Assembly: GCA_965112735.1 (NCBI GenBank)
Contig: OZ218950.1
Coordinates: 1,736,001 to 1,800,000 of the forward strand
Source: Phaeosaccion multiseriatum
Taxonomy: Eukaryota; Protista; Ochrophyta, other classes
Direction of reading: 5' to 3'
DNA length: 64,000 nt
In this document: piece after piece, positions 16,783 to 27,071 of the stretch
Numbering within the stretch: position 1 is the first letter of the stretch
Layout: each line of letters opens with the position of its first letter
The notes under the pieces: generated by a model
Databases searched by the model: none
What the model saw: the letters and a program-made list of their open reading frames with translations, nothing else
What the model was told of the DNA's origin: nothing
Program-made: the position numbers and the translations under genes

Positions 16783-17018
16783 CTTTGCCCCTGTTCGTTA
16801 CTCAAGCTCCTTTTTCCCCAGCTCCAAGTGCACGCGTAAATAGATAGACAGACTCCTTCTCCGCTTCGCGCAAGGCGCGACAACAGATAGCTGAGGGGAG
16901 GCAGCTCTTAAGACAGAGGGAGATGGAGGAAAAAGGAGAAAAAATCCGAGTTGGAGTTTCAGCTCCTGCGGCCCTCCCCTTCTTCCCTTTTCCAGACTCT
17001 ACTTGTAGTAGCTTCGTG
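16783..17018. promoter_or_regulatory. Putative bidirectional promoter (uL23m / RRP40)
   Basis: Head-to-head start codons about 236 bp apart. Confidence 0.5.
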
Positions 17019-18023
17019 ATGGAAGACGACGGCAGCGCGGATGGGGGCCAGGCAGAGGCGCTTAGCTTCCTGGATCAGGTCACAAAGGTGAGGAACCATC
17101 CTGCAGAGAGAGAGAGGCCTTGCCGCTCTCACCAGAGAGTGTCTTTTTTAACTTTTTCCCTCTTCGCCCTCTCGCCCTCTCGCCCGCAGATGGTGCAGTT
17201 CGAGCCTTCGGTAGTAATCCCGGGCGACGACGTGACGGCCCGGGTAACGCTCACGGGAGGAAAGCAGCTGCGCCTGGGGCCCGGGCTTCTCATGAAGGGA
17301 GAGAGGGTCGTGGCCACCCGTGCGGGGATGCTGCGCTTCAAATCTAAGAGGACCTTCTGGGTGGAGTCCAATCAGAAGCGATACGTGCCCCGCGCGGAAG
17401 ATCAGGCATGTCAGCTGTCAACTCTGCTCTCTCTCTCTCTCGGGACGTACTGCCTGCCTTCTGCAGCTGCCTCTGGCTATGTGCATTATTATTTACGCCT
17501 ATCGTGTGTTTGTGTCAACACACTCAGGCTGCGATGTTATTCGTACTTACCCTAGTCTTCCCTTCCCGTCCCGTCTATCCATATCCAAGCACAGGTGATT
17601 GGCGTGGTGGAGGACCGCGTCGGAGACTACTATCGCGTGGGTGTGTGGGGTACCTCCCCCACGCTCCTGCCCCTCATGGCTTTTGATGGGGCCACCAAAC
17701 GCAACAAGCCCAACTTGCGCGCGGGTTCCCTGGTGTTCTGCAGGGTAGTCAACGCCAGCAAGGTGGGTTGGGGGTGTGGAGAGGAGGGGCGGGAGGGACT
17801 ACACTCACCTCGCTGGCGCTCTTTGTACGGACATAGGCCCTTTTCCCTTTTGAGTGAAGCCTACGAGGCATGTGTGAGGTGTTGTGCAATCTCCCTCGGT
17901 GGTGTCAGGTCTACGTGGGAAAGCTCCTCTCTCTCTAGCTCGCCCACTCTTGTCTCTTTCTCTCCCTCAAATACACACAACCCACGCTCCCTCCTCCTCC
18001 TCCTCCTCCTCCTCCTCCTCCTC

Positions 18024-18064
<41 letters not shown>

Positions 18065-18907
18065 GGTGCTACTGCGGCTCTGCTCGTGCTTCCGCAGGAC
18101 ATGGAGCCCGAGCTGACATGTTGTGCGGGGGCATCGTCAGCCAACAAGAAGGACTGGATGACAGGCGAGGCCATCTATGGAGAGCTTAGAGGAGGGCTGA
18201 TGATGAGATGCAGGTAAGTCAACAAGGGGAGGGAGGAATTGGAGGGAGGGAGGGAGGGAGGGAGGGAGGGGGTGACTGTCTCACTGACTGAGTCAGTGGG
18301 CGCGTGTGGGAGGGAGGGAGCGGGCGAGGCGAGAGAAGGGGCGAGGCTTGCATCGATCGACTCGGCTGTGATTTACGCCACTTGTGATTCACGCCAGAGC
18401 AAGACGGCGCAGCACGATGATAGAGAGACAAGAAGCGGGAACATGAGGGAAGGGAGAGAGAGAGCGGCGAGAGTGAAACGGACTTAGCAGGCGCCTCATC
18501 CTCCCCTCTTTCTCTGTCGAATCAGCCTGTGTCCTCAGTTTTTACATCTCCTCCTCCTCCTCTTCATCTTCTTCCCCCTCCCCCTCCTCCTCCTCCTCCT
18601 CCTCCTCCTCCTCCTCCTCCTCCTCCTCCTCCTCCTCATCCCCCCCCCCTCCAGCGCAATGCACGCCCGGAGCATGCTCAGGCCTGACTGTGTGGTGCTC
18701 AATGCCCTCGGCCGGCGCATCCCCTTCGAAGTGGTGATTGGTCTGAATGGCGCCTTTTGGGTCAACGCAAAGGAAACACGGCACGTGGTGGCCCTGGCCA
18801 ATGCCATTCTCAACGCGGATGTGATGGATGACGCGGAGACTGAGGCGATGGTGGAGAGACTGTGGAGAGAGCTACTGAAGAAGGATAAGGAGGAGAGCAG
18901 CGGCTAG
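17019..18907 (+). CDS. RRP40: Exosome complex component RRP40; exons 17019-17087, 17190-17405, 17595-17762, 18098-18213, 18655-18907
   Basis: Motifs VIPGD, RLGPGL, KRYVPRAEDQ|VIGVV, AFDGATKRNKPNL, DMEPELTC, GEAIYGELRGG and PFEVVIGLNGAFWV. Intron 2 needs a GC donor (CAG|GCATGT). Confidence 0.95.
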
Positions 18908-20384: not shown

Positions 20385-21148
20385 CTACCAACGGTGCTCC
20401 GAAAGCGGGAAAGCGGCGCGCATTTCAAGGGCACCTCTTCTTCTCGCCGCCGCCCCTGCACCCCCCGTCCCATCCCTTCCTCCTCCCCCTCCCATCATTC
20501 CCATCTGCTCGGCCACTTGCAGCTCCCGCACCAGGCCACTCCAGGTGATGCCCAGCTCATGGAGACGCAACTCCAGCTCCAACACCGCAGCCTTCGCAGC
20601 AGAGGCGACAGAGCCAGCAGAGGCAGCACATGTCTCCCTTGGTAGAGTTTCCCACCTCGCTTCAACACCACGACCGTCGTGATCATCTTCATCGTCAAGG
20701 TCAGTAAAGTCTTCATCCAGGTCGCCAAACTCGGTGCCACACAGGACGTAATCCACCGCCATGCTGCCCACCCGCGCCAGCCCTTCGGCTGTAAACTCCA
20801 TGCCGAGCTCCCTCCACTCCTCTTTCTCCTTCTGCTGCTGCCCCTCCTCCTTCTGCTGCTGTCCCTGCTCCTGCTGCTGTTCCTGCTGCCACAGCTGCTC
20901 TGCGCCAGAGCAAAGGTGCTCCTCAAGAGAGACAGCCTCGGCCAGCAGGTGGTGGCACTGCTGCCTCAGGGCGACCAAGAGCGACTCCTCCTCCCTCGAC
21001 TCGGTCGGCACCGCTAACCCAGTCCCTTCCACATCGCCGGCCGGCAGAGGTAAGTCGTCCTCTGTGTGGACTGCGTCCCCTCCATTCTGATGAGTATCGC
21101 CATCGGCCGCCCCTCCGGCTGCTCCGTTCGATGTTGCCGTACCACCAA

Positions 21149-21193
<45 letters not shown>

Positions 21194-24100
21194 ATGAGGA
21201 TGGTGGTGGTGGCGCTGGTGGTGGTGGTGCTGCTACTACTTCCAACGCTCCTCCTCCTCCTCCTCCTCCTCCTGCTGCTGCTCCTGCTGGCGGGGGCTGA
21301 TGGAGCAGTAATAGCTGGATGAGGTTTTGCTCTACGACGGGCAGGAACAAGGCCACGCCCTCTCTCACACGGGCCAGGCGCTCACCGAGGGAAAGCTCCC
21401 CTTGTCCTGACTCCTTCAAAGACAGGAGAGAAGGGAGGGCCACTGATCCAACTTCACCACCGCCTGTCTCACCGCATCTTCCTCTTCCTCCCCCTCCTCC
21501 TCCTCCTCCTCCTCCTCCTCCTCCTGCTGCTGCTGCTCCTACTCCTGCTGCTGCTGCTGCTGCTTCTGCTACTCTATTGCCGCTACTGGTGAACGTCCGC
21601 CGACCCTTCATCAGTGCCTCTACACCGCCGCCTCTTTCATTCAAACTGGTGCCATTCCTCCCTCGCAGCATCTCCGATGGGACCTTGCCAACCGAAGAGG
21701 AAGACACCGATGAGGAGGATGATATCGTCCCTGCACCTGAGCCTTGAGGGAGAGAGCTCTTCTTCCCGGCTGCAAATAGCGGTACTGACACCTGCCCCTT
21801 CTTCTTCATGGCTACCGACCACGCATCTCTCCTCCCCCCCTTCACCTTGGTCTCCAAGTGTAACGCTTGGCCTCTCTCCCTCTCCCTCTCCCTCTCCCTC
21901 TCGCTATCCCTATCCCTTCCCCTCTCCCTTTCCCTCTGCTCCCTGTCTCCACCCTGCTGCTGCCCCTTCTCTCCCACCCCTCTTGTTCTATCGTAGTCTC
22001 CGCCTCCTCCGGACGTGAGCACCGTCATTTCAGACGGAACGACGCTTCCCTCTCCATCTGATGTCCCGCGCCTTTCCTTCCCCTGTCTACCCTCCCTCTC
22101 CTCTTCCTCAACTTCTCTTTCTGAATTGTTCTCCCCAACCGCTTCCTCCTCCCTCTCCCCCTCCTCCTCCTCCTCCTCCTCCTCCTCCTCCTTCTGCCCC
22201 TCAGCGTCTTCTTTTCTCGCGTCTTCGATGGGCACATACCTTCGTCCTTCCCTCCTGAAACGTATTGGAAACATGGCAACCTTACTCACTTTCGAATTCA
22301 GCAGCTCCTCTAACGTGGGGAAAAGCCCCAACCTTCCCCGCTCGTCGGTAAAATAGCCATTCTCGTACACAAGAATGACGTGCCGAATGCCGCTGTCCCC
22401 TCCTCCCCCGTCCGCCGTAGCAGCCATCTGACCGAAGGAGCCTTGCCTATTGAGTCGACTTCCGCCATTCCTTCCATCAGCCCCTCCACCCCCGCCCCCG
22501 CTCCCACCCACACCCACACCCGCACCGCCCCCCCTACCCCTCCTCCCTTTCCCTCCTTGTGCCTCCTTCTGCGAAGCTGCAGCGGCAGAGGAGGAGGTAG
22601 CGGTTGGAGGTGGCTTCTTGGCAATGAAGCTCAGCACAAACTCAGTAGGGCTCTTCCTTCTCAGCAGGAAGGTGCCCTCCGGTCTCCCGCCGCCCTCGAG
22701 CAACAGTCCCTCGGCCTCTTCTCTGCTCAGCCAGCCTCCAAAGTACTGCCAGCCCGCGTCTGACCCCGCTCCTGCTGCTGCTGCCCCTCCTGCTGCTGCG
22801 CCCTCTCTCCTCCCTCGTGCCTCCTCCCCGCCCTCCTCGCTCGAGGGCCCCGTGGAGAGAGGCTGGACGCCCTGCTCCAGTGCCCGCCAAAACAAGACCT
22901 CTAAGCCTCGCTCGTTGACTGCCACTGCGGAAGGACTACCCACGGGAGCGGTCGATGTGGTGGTGGTGGTGGTGGTGGTGGTGGTGGTGGTGGTGGTGGT
23001 GGTGGAGGAGGAGGAGGGGGAGGAGAAGAGCGTACGCTTCAAGCCGACGGGCAGCGGATCAGGCCTTGGTGGTGATATAGTAGCAGCAGCTGCTGCAGGA
23101 TTTGGTGATACGCCTTGAAGGCTGTCCAGCTCCTCCTGCTGCTGTCTGAGACGCTCGTTGCGCTGCTTCATCATGAGCGAGTAAAGCACGCGCATGACTT
23201 CAGATACCGACAACTGGCGACTGAGCACACCACTGATCCTCTCTGCTTGACTTTCTTCATCATCCCAATCGCCCCCCCCCTGGCCCGTCCCACTCGGCTT
23301 GGATCCACCGCTGCCGCGGCGAGAGCCACCAGCGCCACCAGCGCCAGGGGCACTAGAGCCACCGGCGTAGCTTCCCCAACCTCCTCTCCTCCTCCGGCCG
23401 ATGTCGTAATCACCGAGAGACTCATTCCCCACCGTACTGTGCCACTTGCCTGAGAAGGCCGCGGCGGTGGTATAGGCGTTGAGCGCCTTCTTGCCCGCCA
23501 CGTACATGTCGGCCAAGTCCGCCTTGTGCGCTAGGAGCATCTTGACAGCTGTGGGGGGTAGGTGGGGGAGAAGGGCAGAGTGCCACTCGTCGACGGCACG
23601 GAGGCTGTGGCTGCTGGAGAGGTCGAAGACAAAGCAGACGGCGGCAGCTGCCGACCCCAGCAGGCCGTGCTGACACGCCGGGCTGTTAAGTTCGCTGGCC
23701 GACACGTCCCAGAGGTGCATCAGCACCTTCCTACTACTGCTGCCTTTGCCATTGCCAGTGTCGTTGCTGTTGCGATTGTCCCCCCTTCGGCCGCTATTCT
23801 TGTCGCTGCTGTGATCCAGGAGCGGGAAGTGCTCCTGGGGAATAATAGTCACGACATCAAAGCCTGTCAAAGAGAAGGAATGGGATAGTAAGAGATAGTG
23901 CGGGACACTGAGACATGGGGGGACGGAGAACGCAACACGGCACCGCCCTTTTTCCTTCTTCCTCCTTCCTTCCTCGCTTCCCCCGTCAACCTCTCTTCTC
24001 TCCCTTACCCTGAGTTGGTACGTAGTCATATTGGAACGACTGATTGGTCAACCTGCGCACTAGACTGGTCTTTCCCACTCCCGGGCCTCCCACGAGCAAA

Positions 24101-24216
24101 ATTTTGAACTCGATGTCATGGTCAATGCCAGAGGAGGTGCGCCGTACGCTACCGCTGGGTCGTTCCTCTCTCAGCCTCTGCTCCTTCTGCGGCTTGGGCT
24201 GCTTCTTAGGCCACAT
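20385..24216 (-). CDS. Rab/Ras-like small-GTPase domain fused to an SH2 domain, with a long low-complexity/helical C-terminus; exons 24216-24009, 23863-20385
   Basis: GTPase: FKILLVGGPGVGKTS (P-loop), YVPTQG|FD (switch I), HLWDVSA (G3 variant), VCFVFDLS, LLAHKADL (G4 variant). SH2: WQYFGGWLSREEAEGLL..PEGTFLLR..FVLSF..IRHVIL..FPTLEELL. Confidence 0.85.
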
Positions 24217-24368
24217 GGCCTCATCACTTCTCGGGGTCAAGCGTTAATTAAAACATGTGAGTCGAACACGGCTGATTTAAGCTTGCGTGTTGGTCATACG
24301 GAGCATGTCTTTCCTGGCCAGGTGTTTATGGTTGCCTCTGCTGCGTGTGCAGCGCGCGAGGAGAAGGG
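24217..24368. promoter_or_regulatory. Putative bidirectional promoter (Rab-SH2 / EamA transporter)
   Basis: Divergent ATGs only about 150 bp apart. Confidence 0.45.
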
Positions 24369-26754
24369 ATGCGTCTTCCTCTCATCCTTCTCTTGGCCGC
24401 TGAAAGCAGCGGCGTTCAGAGGAGCGAAGCGAGAGCCACTGCAGCCGCCTTCCAGGGCGGCCCTTCTCCATTTCGAGAGGGGAGGAGAGGAGGAAGAGGA
24501 GTAAAAGGAGGGGGGTTATCACGTGCTCAGGGTCTCTGCGATCGTCAGTATCGAACAAACTCTCACCATGGTGATGTGCACACTCGCAAACGCCCCCGGT
24601 GGATGACTCCTCCCACTACTTTCGGATACGGAAGCTGGAGGACAACGACATCTCCTCTTACGCTGCGGATGGCCCAACCGAATACGGCAAATGAGGGGGA
24701 TGGGGAGAAGGAGGCATCGCTCGTGCAGCACAGGCAACCCACCCAACCCACCTCGAAAGACCTAGCACCTGCCACAATTGCGCCACCGCCCGTGCCCACA
24801 GAAGAAACTTCGAGGCCGTGGAAGAGTCTGGGGGTGCTTGGTCTCGTTCCGTTGGTTTGGGGTGAGTCATTGTGTTAGTTTGGGGGAGCCACTGCCCTCA
24901 TCCCGCTGGTTTGGGTTAGTTTCGTGTTGTGTTTTGCTTCGTCAGAGGAAGAGGGCCTATCATCCCCTTGTCTCTGCAAGGTTTGTGTTTCGTCCAAGGA
25001 AGGTGACTATTATCCACTTGGCTCTGCAAGTTGGATGCATGGAAGAGTCTCTGGGGGAGTTTGATCTCGTCCCATTGGTTTGGAGTGAGGGATTGTATTG
25101 TGTTTCGTCCCGGAGAGGTGCCTATTCAGCAACTTGTCTCCAGCTGGACTTGGCGCTGCTCTTGCTCGCAATCGCTCTAGTTTTAACCTTTGGGCCCGTG
25201 TGCCCTGCGCCCCCCCCTCCCCCCCCTACGCTTCTGGGCCCTTGTCTTACAGGGACATATACGCCTTCGGTGAAGTTCATGTACAACTTGTCCGAGGTGA
25301 GTGCGTGAATGAGTGAGTGAGGGAGTGAGAAGTGAGTGAGTGAGTGAGTGAGTGGATGGCCTTGCGCATGCCCTAATCTCGGTCCTTCCTCCCCTCCCTG
25401 TCTCTATCCAGGCATACCACCCGCCGCCCCTGCTCTTCAATCTGGCATCATACATCGTCTCAGCCGGTACTTTGCTCCTTCTGTCTACTCTGAGGACATC
25501 TGAGAAGGAGAAGCCTCTACCTAAACAAAGTGTCCCAAGTAGTGGTAGTAGTAGTAGTAGTAGTTATACTAGCAGTAGCGGTGATAGTAGCAGTAGTAGT
25601 AACAGTAGCAGCAGAAGAGGAAGGGGCGCAATGAACGCGTCCACCAACGCCGCACAAGGAAGCTCTCAGTGCGGGATGGAGGTGACATCAGGGTCAGGGT
25701 CAGGGTCAGGGTCAGGATCAGGAGGATCGGGGTCAGAGGCAGTCACCCACGATACAGCAGCAGCAGTTGGTGATGCAGCAGCTGACCGCCGAGCACTGAT
25801 ACTGGCCGGCGCAGAGCTCGGCGGCTGGCTCTTCCTCGGCAGTACCGTCCAGATCTACGGCTTGCAACTCACCACGGCCAGTAGAGCGGCCTTCCTGGTC
25901 CAATTGACCACAGCCATGGTGCCTTTGTTGGAGGGGCTCTTGCTCAAGAGAAGGGGTATGTCGGTGCAGCTGCTGCTTGGGTGTGGCTTAGCCACGGCAG
26001 GAGTTGGGCTCATGAGTGGGGGTGGTCAAGCGGTGGTGGAGGCGGTTACGAGCCTCTTGACTTCTGCGTACTCCGGAAGTAGTTGGGTAGGAGCAGGAGG
26101 AGCAACAGCAGCAGCAGCAGCAGGGGGAGGAGGAGGAGGAGGAGCTGGGGTTGTGGCAGGGTCCACTTTGGTGGGAGATTTGGCTGTGGGCTTGAGTGCG
26201 GTGTTCTACTCGATGCACGTCATTCGATTGGGTGAGTCAGACAAGATGGAGAGGGGGGGCAAGAACAAGAGGAGGGAGAGGAAGCGAAAGCAGGGAGAGG
26301 AAGAGCAAGAGGAAAGAGGAAGAGGCCTGCTCCTGACCCTGCCCTCTCTCCCTCTCCCTCTCCCTCTCTCCGTCTTTCTATCTTCTCTCTCTCTTTCCCT
26401 CTCTCTCTCTCTGTTCTCTCTCCCTCTCTTTCTCTCTCCCTCAGGGTACCATGCAACAAAGCTCCGACAGGCCTTGAATCTATCGGCATGCAAAGCAGCT
26501 GCTGAAGTCTTTTACTCCATCCTCGCAGTCTCACTCGCGGCCTTTATCGGCGGTCAATGGGGAAGCTTTGTGGGGTGGGCGCAGCGGGTGGCTCACAGCG
26601 GCCACGCTTTGGGGGTGATTGGGGGGGTAGTGCTGTGGAATGGAGCCCTCACTACAGCCTTTACCATTCTGGCGCAGTCCTATGGGCAAGAGGTCAGTGA
26701 GAGACGAGAAAGAGAGATACGCACACCCACACACGCACCCACACACACACACGT

Positions 26755-26788
<34 letters not shown>

Positions 26789-27071
26789 ACCCCAAGGCCT
26801 TGTTCTATTGCTCCATCGTTGCGTCGGTCGTATTGTGGTGACCAATGCCACAGCGTGTCAAGCCGTCTGAGGCAAACCTGATCTACACTCTGCAGCCGCT
26901 GTGGTCCACGCTGTTCGCCGCCCTGCTCCTGCACGAGAACGCCTTCTCCAGCCCCTCGGAGGTGTGTCTGGGATTCTCAAGGCAGTGATTGATTGATATG
27001 TCAGTATTCTCCTTTTTTCCCTTATTACTGCTTTGCCAGTCTGTTATTTGTTACCGAACTCTCTGCTGGTC

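Follow-up and report, generated by a model that had tools for sequence, protein, structure and literature searches.

A predicted fusion of an atypical Rab-like GTPase and a classical SH2 domain in Phaeosaccion multiseriatum, conserved among stramenopiles

SH2 domains are the classic readers of phosphotyrosine (pTyr), and the signalling networks built on them are regarded as having arisen largely in animals, amoebozoans and the unicellular relatives of animals. Where such a reader meets small-GTPase signalling in animal and amoebozoan proteins, as in RIN1-3 (SH2-Vps9), p120 RasGAP, Vav and the chimaerins, the SH2 domain is joined to a guanine nucleotide exchange factor (GEF) or a GTPase-activating protein (GAP), not to the GTPase itself. 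In the large Rabs (Rab44/45/CRACR2A, Rab40) the Rab domain is located at the C terminus of a longer protein and carries a prenyl tail. We know of no ROCO protein or large Rab with an SH2 domain. The gene described here, located on the minus strand of a 64-kb stretch of the Phaeosaccion multiseriatum genome (contig OZ218950.1, positions 1,736,001 to 1,800,000; hereafter the window), encodes an atypical Rab-like GTPase domain and an SH2 domain in a single protein. Sequence comparison identifies this fusion as a conserved stramenopile family, the members of which are hypothetical or unnamed in public databases.

The window protein resembles RIN, RasGAP, Vav and the chimaerins in tying a phosphotyrosine reader to small-GTPase signalling. 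Pfam found in it no Vps9, RasGAP, DH(-PH) or RA domain, and no Vps9, RasGAP or DH-PH domain was found in its orthologues. With the ROCO proteins and the large Rabs it shares a Ras-like GTPase inside a multidomain protein, and the Pfam Roc model also matches it; assignment to the ROCO proteins was rejected, as Pfam on the 1,214-aa open reading frame (ORF) gave only Ras/Roc-type and SH2 families, with no COR domain. The likeness to ordinary Rabs (Rab1/Ypt1, Rab5/22, Rab7) comprises the P-loop, the switch-I T.G.D pattern and the WD..... context of G3. Unlike them, the window protein has no Cys prenylation motif and no catalytic Gln, its G5 motif is replaced, and its GTPase is followed by over 900 further residues.

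The gene consists of two exons (Table 1), which together give a spliced reading frame of 3,687 nt (1,228 codons) and a protein of 1,228 aa. An 84-codon ORF (24240-23986) contains GGPGVGKTS and terminates in YVPTQG, and a 1,214-codon ORF (24029-20385) comprises the remaining parts. The spliced junction YVPTQ-G-FDVV recreates the contiguous YV.T.GFD. sequence of the brown-algal and other orthologues (YVKTLGFDI in Pylaiella), which is the best support at hand for the splice model. Reading on from an in-frame stop, the first ATG in frame is that at 24216, and the orthologues begin at a comparable distance ahead of beta1. An out-of-frame ATG (24222-24224, minus strand) is located 8 nt ahead of it and opens a 17-codon upstream ORF overlapping the start codon; further ATGs exist upstream, and any of these ATGs may belong to the 5' untranslated region. 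The frame of exon 2 is stop-free over 1,158 codons, whereas the other two minus-strand frames contain 31 and 40 stops in this stretch, on average one per 30-37 codons. Since this intact 3.5-kb frame is open down to 20385 and ends in a conserved C-terminal motif, 20385 is taken as the true gene end, and the gene is about twice as long as in the sequence-only reading, which had confined it to 22280-24216.

Because G3, G4 and the SH2 domain share this one open exon, with no stop between them, they are assigned to a single gene. That two neighbouring genes, one for a small GTPase and one for an SH2 protein, were read together by accident is extremely improbable. The case for such an accident comes from Phaeothamnion confervicola, in which the GTPase part and the N-terminal half of the SH2 domain are deposited as separate partial proteins, CAM9510345.1 (P0010) and CAM9510414.1 (P0099). 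These entries are, however, partial models, each on a 5,448-bp contig, and probably represent one gene split by annotation, and in over 20 relatives, drawn from independent sources, a single product contains both domains. The motifs listed in the sequence-only reading were all found on the minus strand, and its placement of GTPase and SH2 in one spliced ORF agrees both with the stop-free exon and with annotated orthologues carrying both domains in one protein.

The SH2 domain was identified by profile and by structural comparison. The Pfam model PF00017, with a curated cut-off of 21 bits, scored 23.9 bits when run on the whole ORF; with the N-terminal half by itself the score was 30.1 bits (E 5e-7), and the C-terminal half alone gave no Pfam match. 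A single-sequence search of the PDB returned SH2 proteins, among them Syk, SH2B, ZAP-70, SHP2 and Fyn, apart from one PTEN chain that matched the low-complexity insert. In an alignment of the SH2 domains of 25 family members, with the window protein as the first row, W12, R21, G37, R42 and H135 are each at least 90% conserved. At E<0.01 the family profile matched 268 distinct solved chains; all 60 of the chains listed are SH2 proteins, with E 1.7e-14 for ZAP-70 and E 1e-11 for SHP2 over profile positions 10-105, that is, across both halves of the domain.

An AlphaFold2 model based on the 25-sequence alignment has a mean predicted local distance difference test (pLDDT) score of 73.8, with two core blocks at 85-96 and the insert at ~47-55; it supersedes a first, unusable model from a 5-sequence alignment (pLDDT 41). 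The modelled elements follow the order alphaA, betaB, betaC, insert, betaD, betaE, alphaB, betaG. The top 50 Foldseek matches were all SH2 domains, with a template modelling (TM) score by target of up to 0.72. VIA-align superposed 91/99 residues on the C-terminal SH2 domain of PLC-gamma1 (5tqs_D) with Z 11.9 and a root-mean-square deviation of 2.1 A; 538 of 789 chains reached Z >=8, and the 50 listed were all classical SH2s. The top-50 structural matches were all Src-type and none was STAT, the domain being set apart from STAT by match ranking only. In classical SH2 domains the phosphotyrosine is held by the alphaA Arg, the betaB5 Arg and the betaD His, and all three are kept here. Profile and model together give a solid indication of a genuine classical (Src-type) SH2 fold with intact phosphate-pocket residues. 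The domain identity proposed from the letters alone has thus held on both counts, with a Pfam score above the cut-off and family-profile matches to solved SH2s across both halves, and with a predicted model that gives the SH2 fold at Z 11-12. A chance FLLR motif was rejected on the Pfam, family-profile and structural matches.

The SH2 domain is interrupted in its CD loop by a low-complexity insert that is predicted to be disordered. The insert and its place are as described in the sequence-only reading, but its length of about 65 aa has to be corrected to 73 aa. A long insert occupies the same place in brown algae; Tribonema, the oomycetes, Chrysoparadoxa and the majority of short forms of the family lack it.

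Alternatively, the SH2 domain could read phosphoserine or phosphothreonine (pSer, pThr) in the manner of Spt6, or an unphosphorylated or lipid ligand. Spt6 provides the precedent, its SH2 domains binding pThr/pSer on the RNA polymerase II linker (PMC5599234), and for Phytophthora infestans Judelson and Ah-Fong reported only two tyrosine kinases, together with dual-specificity kinases and four proteins with plausible SH2 domains (PMC3019232). The sequence and fold of the domain nevertheless match the classical pTyr-binding SH2s and not Spt6 or STAT, its alphaA Arg, betaB5 Arg and betaD His are in place, and dual-specificity and tyrosine-kinase-like kinases are known to phosphorylate Tyr in the lineage. 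We therefore consider a ligand other than pTyr unlikely.

The GTPase domain is similar to Rabs and departs from them at several of the nucleotide-binding motifs. On exon 1 Pfam gave 28.9 bits for Roc and 28.0 bits for Ras; the nearest solved structures to the exon-2 part were Rab22A, Rab25, Rab31 and Rab7 (phmmer against the PDB). The complete GTPase domain of the Ectocarpus orthologue matched Rab1A best (72.8 bits), and all matches listed were Rabs. The G1 motif GxxxxGK[ST] and the switch-I Thr required in the Ras superfamily are present (GGPGVGKT, YVPTQG). The G3 region reads DVSAS in place of DTAGQ, with Gly replaced by Ala and the catalytic Gln by Ser, so that both DxxG and the Gln are lost; G4 is HKAD instead of NKxD, with Asn replaced by His; and the position of the G5 SAK is occupied by the family signature W..TVG...GDYD. 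The G3 and G4 deviations are as noted in the sequence-only reading. Across the family alignment the catalytic Gln is missing in every member. The G3 Gly is present in brown algae, Tribonema and P0006 (DVAG) and absent in oomycetes (DVSS) and the window, and Pinguiococcus and the majority of short environmental forms retain the G4 Asn (NKAD). The P-loop, the switch-I Thr, the G3 Asp and the G4 Lys and Asp are kept in the window and in most members, whether from ochrophytes, oomycetes or environmental sequences.

The portion of the 37-aa beta2-beta3 insert that was inspected contains no GT dinucleotide, so an intron cannot start within that portion. The QLSVSE stretch is the putative final helix of the GTPase. 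No C-terminal Cys prenylation motif (CC, CXC, CaaX) was found in the right register in any member, and the window protein ends in FPLSEHRW. The RabF1-F5 motifs of Rabs are said, after Pereira-Leal and Seabra, to be IGVDF, KLQIW, RFrsiT, YYRGA and LVYDIT; inspection by eye revealed part matches in QGFDV, LMHLW and FVFDLS and nothing RabF3-like. Since this motif is lacking, the domain is, as judged from its sequence, Rab-derived but not a Rab proper. A role in membrane traffic, which the sequence-only reading had suggested, gains from the Rab-like similarity but is otherwise little supported, given the absence of prenylation motifs and the partial RabF motifs.

The altered DVSA and HKAD motifs, the replacement of G5 by W..TVG and the lack of the catalytic Gln in all members would also suit a pseudo-GTPase, which neither binds nor cycles nucleotide and offers a fixed interaction surface, the whole protein then being a plain SH2 adaptor or scaffold. 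The beta2-beta3 insert, the Gly-rich insert ahead of QLSVSE and the Pfam Ras score of only 19.3 bits on exon 2 alone point in the same direction. However, most members, the window included, conserve the nucleotide-contact residues (P-loop GxxxxGKT, switch-I Thr, G3 Asp, G4 Lys/Asp), which would not be expected to persist after loss of binding, and the canonical Gly and Asn survive in the DVAG of brown algae and Tribonema and the NKAD of the short forms. A pseudo-GTPase is on these grounds the less favoured explanation, and we regard it as rather unlikely. Rap-type GTPases also lack the catalytic Gln, yet a GAP still turns them off. The term hydrolysis-dead, used for this domain in the sequence-only reading, was too strong: the family-wide loss of the Gln makes it possible, and the retained P-loop, switch-I Thr, G3 Asp and G4 Lys/Asp keep it from being established.

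Relatives were sought by several routes. A word-index search with the window, in which low-complexity words were dominant and only the 8,000 candidates with the most words in common were scored, yielded one relative, a Pylaiella littoralis protein of 1,338 aa; the same search from this protein revealed the Ectocarpus and Nemacystus orthologues (1,145-1,252 aa). A search of the protein atlas gave no usable match. An exhaustive profile search produced 6,894 matches at E <=0.001, mostly ordinary small GTPases, with 15 below 1e-30, and these were scanned with GTPase and SH2 sub-profiles and with Pfam for both domains in one protein. Both were present in proteins of Pylaiella, Ectocarpus, Nemacystus, Tribonema minus (named 'SH2 domain-containing protein' in UniRef), Peronosclerospora sorghi, Albugo laibachii and Aphanomyces stellatus, and on many contigs from JGI, ENA, Logan and TARA, including marine metagenomes. 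The SH2 match in Aphanomyces astaci was weaker, found by sub-profile and unconfirmed by Pfam, and Pinguiococcus pyrenoidosus was recognized as GTPase-SH2 by sub-profile only, Pfam giving no SH2. Chrysoparadoxa is represented by the SH2 part alone, in a partial model, and Nannochloropsis salina by the GTPase part.

The stramenopile orthologues compared were those of Pylaiella littoralis (P0001), Ectocarpus spp. (P0002-P0004), Nemacystus decipiens (P0005), Tribonema (KAG5179670.1), Albugo (CCA24630.1), Peronosclerospora (KAI9912815.1) and Aphanomyces stellatus (KAF0695825.1). Like the window protein they consist of a Rab-like GTPase with W..TVG..GDYD, a linker, an SH2 domain and a C-terminal Trp motif, with no catalytic Gln and with HKAD at G4. 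In the brown-algal proteins the CD-loop insert, a long tail and a YV(P/L) after the SH2 domain are present as well, but these proteins are only 35-44% identical to the window protein over the aligned regions. The window protein has Ala for the G3 Gly, where brown algae and Tribonema have DVAG, and differs from the orthologues also in an additional beta2-beta3 insert and bigger low-complexity runs. The Tribonema and oomycete proteins are shorter (~570-690 aa) and have no insert in the SH2 domain.

Short forms of 326-404 aa occur in metagenomes, marine and other, and in Pinguiococcus (P0100, P0142, P0043, P0111, P0018, P0068). They have the same domain order as the window protein, W..TVG..GD(Y/F)D and the same SH2 pocket residues, but lack the tail and mostly the SH2 insert, have a mostly canonical NKAD at G4 and form separate, deeper branches. 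Compact GTPase-SH2 genes of 370-383 aa were located on eukaryote-like metagenome contigs, including TARA Oceans (L001, 8001-9113; L003-L005, 3001-4152). One group of short forms has affinity to Pinguiococcus, the sole named organism with a short form. One short-form gene is located on a contig of 16 kb in which gene calls are sparse and fragmented, a pattern that looks eukaryotic.

In a maximum-likelihood tree of the GTPase-to-SH2 region the window protein grouped with the brown algae (89/87), and this group was nested in a clade (99/98) with Tribonema and two more sequences. The sister of that clade comprised the oomycetes and one more sequence, followed by Pinguiococcus with a marine form; the short environmental forms of 326-378 aa were outermost. 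Because the tree broadly tracks the named lineages, it suggests vertical descent within stramenopiles. The gene has an intron, eukaryotic neighbours (Rrp40) and a stramenopile phylogeny, and a bacterial SH2 effector of the Legionella type was therefore rejected; an animal contaminant was rejected because the nearest relatives are stramenopile.

Two further types of sequence came up in these searches. Proteins P0025 (792 aa) and P0076 (1,067 aa), found as SH2 relatives, carry five or six SH2 domains in tandem, with a summed Pfam SH2 score of ~182 bits, and one of the two proteins has a PDZ domain at its N terminus. In the oomycete members P0013, P0015 and P0036 a sub-threshold match to Pfam DUF7145 (19-21 bits, cut-off 28.2) overlaps the SH2 domain, and DUF7145 may, by this overlap, be SH2-related.

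Conservation in the relatives leaves room for the view that only they are functional and that the window copy is decaying or drifting neutrally. The window is the only ochrophyte member in which the G3 Gly is lost, its low-complexity expansions exceed those of the other members, and the sequencing runs containing the locus are read as genomic DNA and not as transcripts. Against this, the 3.5-kb frame is unbroken where other frames meet a stop every 30-37 codons, the near-invariant residues of the SH2 and GTPase domains and the far C-terminal motif are all kept, and the splice junction is clean. Decay of this copy is thus quite improbable.

The regions outside the two domains are less uniform. 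The GTPase-SH2 linker contains a trinucleotide microsatellite, and the poly-Val and poly-Trp ORFs on the plus strand are mechanical products of their position opposite this Thr-codon run. The RE..YV(P/L) sequence that follows the SH2 domain is restricted to the window, the brown algae and Chrysoparadoxa, and its Tyr612 is, as speculation, a candidate site of phosphorylation or self-binding. The tail of ~620 aa is of low complexity, and BLASTP of the 608-aa window tail against the Ectocarpus tail gave nothing significant. A multiple alignment of C termini, however, revealed the pattern ..LE..L...W..(I/V)...L(E) common to brown algae, Tribonema, oomycetes and two further members. This Trp motif is, by its sequence, probably helical, and its presence in relatives argues that the far end of the ORF is real coding sequence.

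Short-read contigs from the source sample break, or their depth climbs several-fold, at 20735-20921, 21140-21297, 21471-21577, 21865-21940 and 22605-22978. These stretches show many loose ends and pseudo-joints and correspond to coding runs that are rich in GC and of low complexity (poly-Gly, poly-Ala, poly-Glu, RE repeats). The assembly graph is probably tangled there by look-alikes at other places in the genome.

In the proposed mechanism the protein would have four parts: a non-prenylated Rab-derived GTPase, a disordered linker, a classical SH2 domain with a disordered CD-loop insert, and a low-complexity tail with the Trp motif. The SH2 domain, instead of a prenyl tail, would position the protein by docking on tyrosine-phosphorylated partners. 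These may be phosphorylated by stramenopile tyrosine kinases, which are few, or by the numerous tyrosine-kinase-like and dual-specificity kinases; tyrosine kinases, dual-specificity kinases and SH2 proteins have been reported in Phytophthora (PMC3019232). The GTPase domain would still bind guanine nucleotide and act as a slow, GAP-dependent or largely GTP-locked switch, presenting effectors at the site where the SH2 domain is docked. The Tyr after the SH2 domain (YVPI) might allow self-binding or pairing, comparable to Src tails or STAT dimers. A conserved stramenopile signalling protein, targeted by its SH2 domain and working as a nucleotide switch (slow or GAP-dependent) or as a scaffold, is the reading of the family that we consider fairly probable. 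The more specific proposal of a phosphotyrosine-gated GTPase ancestral to stramenopiles, in which the role of the lipid anchor is taken over by a classical SH2 domain that brings a Rab-derived, Gln-less switch to pTyr sites, is put forward tentatively.

Several points weigh against a signalling role of this kind. We infer the functions of both domains from sequence. The changes of G3 Gly to Ala and G4 Asn to His may weaken or abolish switching or nucleotide affinity. Dedicated tyrosine kinases are few in stramenopiles, and the binding of pThr/pSer by Spt6 provides an example of an SH2 domain with another ligand. Low-complexity sequence makes up more than half of the window protein, and the Tyr612 motif is confined to one sub-clade. 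The locus was present in four sequencing runs, all from one sample of one study, the contigs of which cover the intron without a joint; it is on this ground that the runs are read as genomic DNA.

The GTPase-SH2 gene is surrounded by ordinary nuclear genes. Downstream of it, on the opposite strand, two ORFs (16923-18116, plus strand) match Rrp40, a subunit of the exosome, with Pfam scores of 42.9 bits for the N-terminal domain and 61.3 bits for the S1 domain, and evidently form one spliced gene. A 509-codon ORF (25352-26881, plus strand) gave a sub-threshold match to the EamA transporter family (22.4 bits, cut-off 28.2). No Rfam family was found in the 64-kb window. The features of the gene are listed in Table 1.

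Table 1. Features of the GTPase-SH2 gene, all on the minus strand (coordinates refer to the window, residues to the spliced protein).
Feature	Coordinates	Residues	Remarks
Exon 1	24009..24216		ATG at 24216; 69 codons + 1 base; basic N terminus, beta1, P-loop, switch-I YVPTQ
Intron	23864..24008		145 nt, GT..AG, phase 1; GT at 24008, AG at 23865-23864
Exon 2	20385..23863		1,158 codons + stop; remainder of GTPase, linker, SH2, tail
Atypical Rab-like GTPase domain	23157..24111	36-305	intron inside
P-loop GGPGVGKTS	24090-24064	43-51	
Switch-I YVPTQ-G-FD	split by intron 24008-23864		Thr kept
beta2-beta3 insert	23837-23727		37 aa, lineage-specific (family alignment)
G3 DVSA	23708-23697	122-125	Asp kept
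G4 HKAD	23528-23517	182-185	Lys and Asp kept
QLSVSE stretch	23219-23157		preceded by Gly-rich insert
Run of 16 Thr codons	22956..23003		trinucleotide microsatellite; GTPase-SH2 linker
SH2 domain	22254..22751	441-606	
SH2 N-terminal half, alphaA-betaB-betaC	22751-22614		alphaA Arg in LSREEAE, betaB5 Arg in FLLR
WQYFGGWLSREEAE and GTFLLR	from 22751	441-471	
CD-loop insert (betaC/betaD)	22395..22613	487-559	73 aa, Gly/Ala/Ser/Arg-rich, low-complexity
SH2 C-terminal half, betaD-betaE-alphaB-betaG	22394-22254		betaD His in IRHVIL; FPTLEELL
FPTLEELL	from 22322	584	
Tyr motif GRRYVPIE	22224..22247		Tyr612; directly after SH2
C-terminal motif ARWETL...LELELRLHELGITWSGLVRELQVAEQMG	20499..20660	1138-1191	end of tail

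No paper describing a small GTPase-SH2 fusion, in stramenopiles or elsewhere, was found in full-text searches of the literature; the two main catalogues of SH2 proteins (Liu et al., 2011; Liu and Nash, 2012) may list it. The Acanthamoeba and Physarum genome papers give amoebozoan SH2 proteins, and the GTPase-SH2 architecture is not among them. The sequence-only reading had presented the architecture as non-standard, which agrees with the literature, but it is not peculiar to this genome. Both domains, and the coupling of SH2 domains to GTPase regulators, are well known; their direct fusion, conserved in a major non-animal lineage, appears to be undescribed.

The family joins a pocket-intact classical SH2 domain directly to a GTPase, instead of a GEF or GAP, across ochrophytes, oomycetes and marine metagenomes. 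It thereby offers a concrete handle on whether phosphotyrosine reading works in stramenopiles and on what it governs, and some of its members come from organisms studied in the laboratory (Ectocarpus, oomycetes). It adds a clear case to the growing set of atypical and pseudo-GTPases, and its signature W..TVG..GDYD without the Gln could serve for annotation. If the protein is indeed a phosphotyrosine-gated GTPase, it would represent an independent, so far undescribed wiring of pTyr reading straight to a G-protein, and would be evidence for reader-based phosphotyrosine signalling in a major lineage that is distant from both animals and amoebae.

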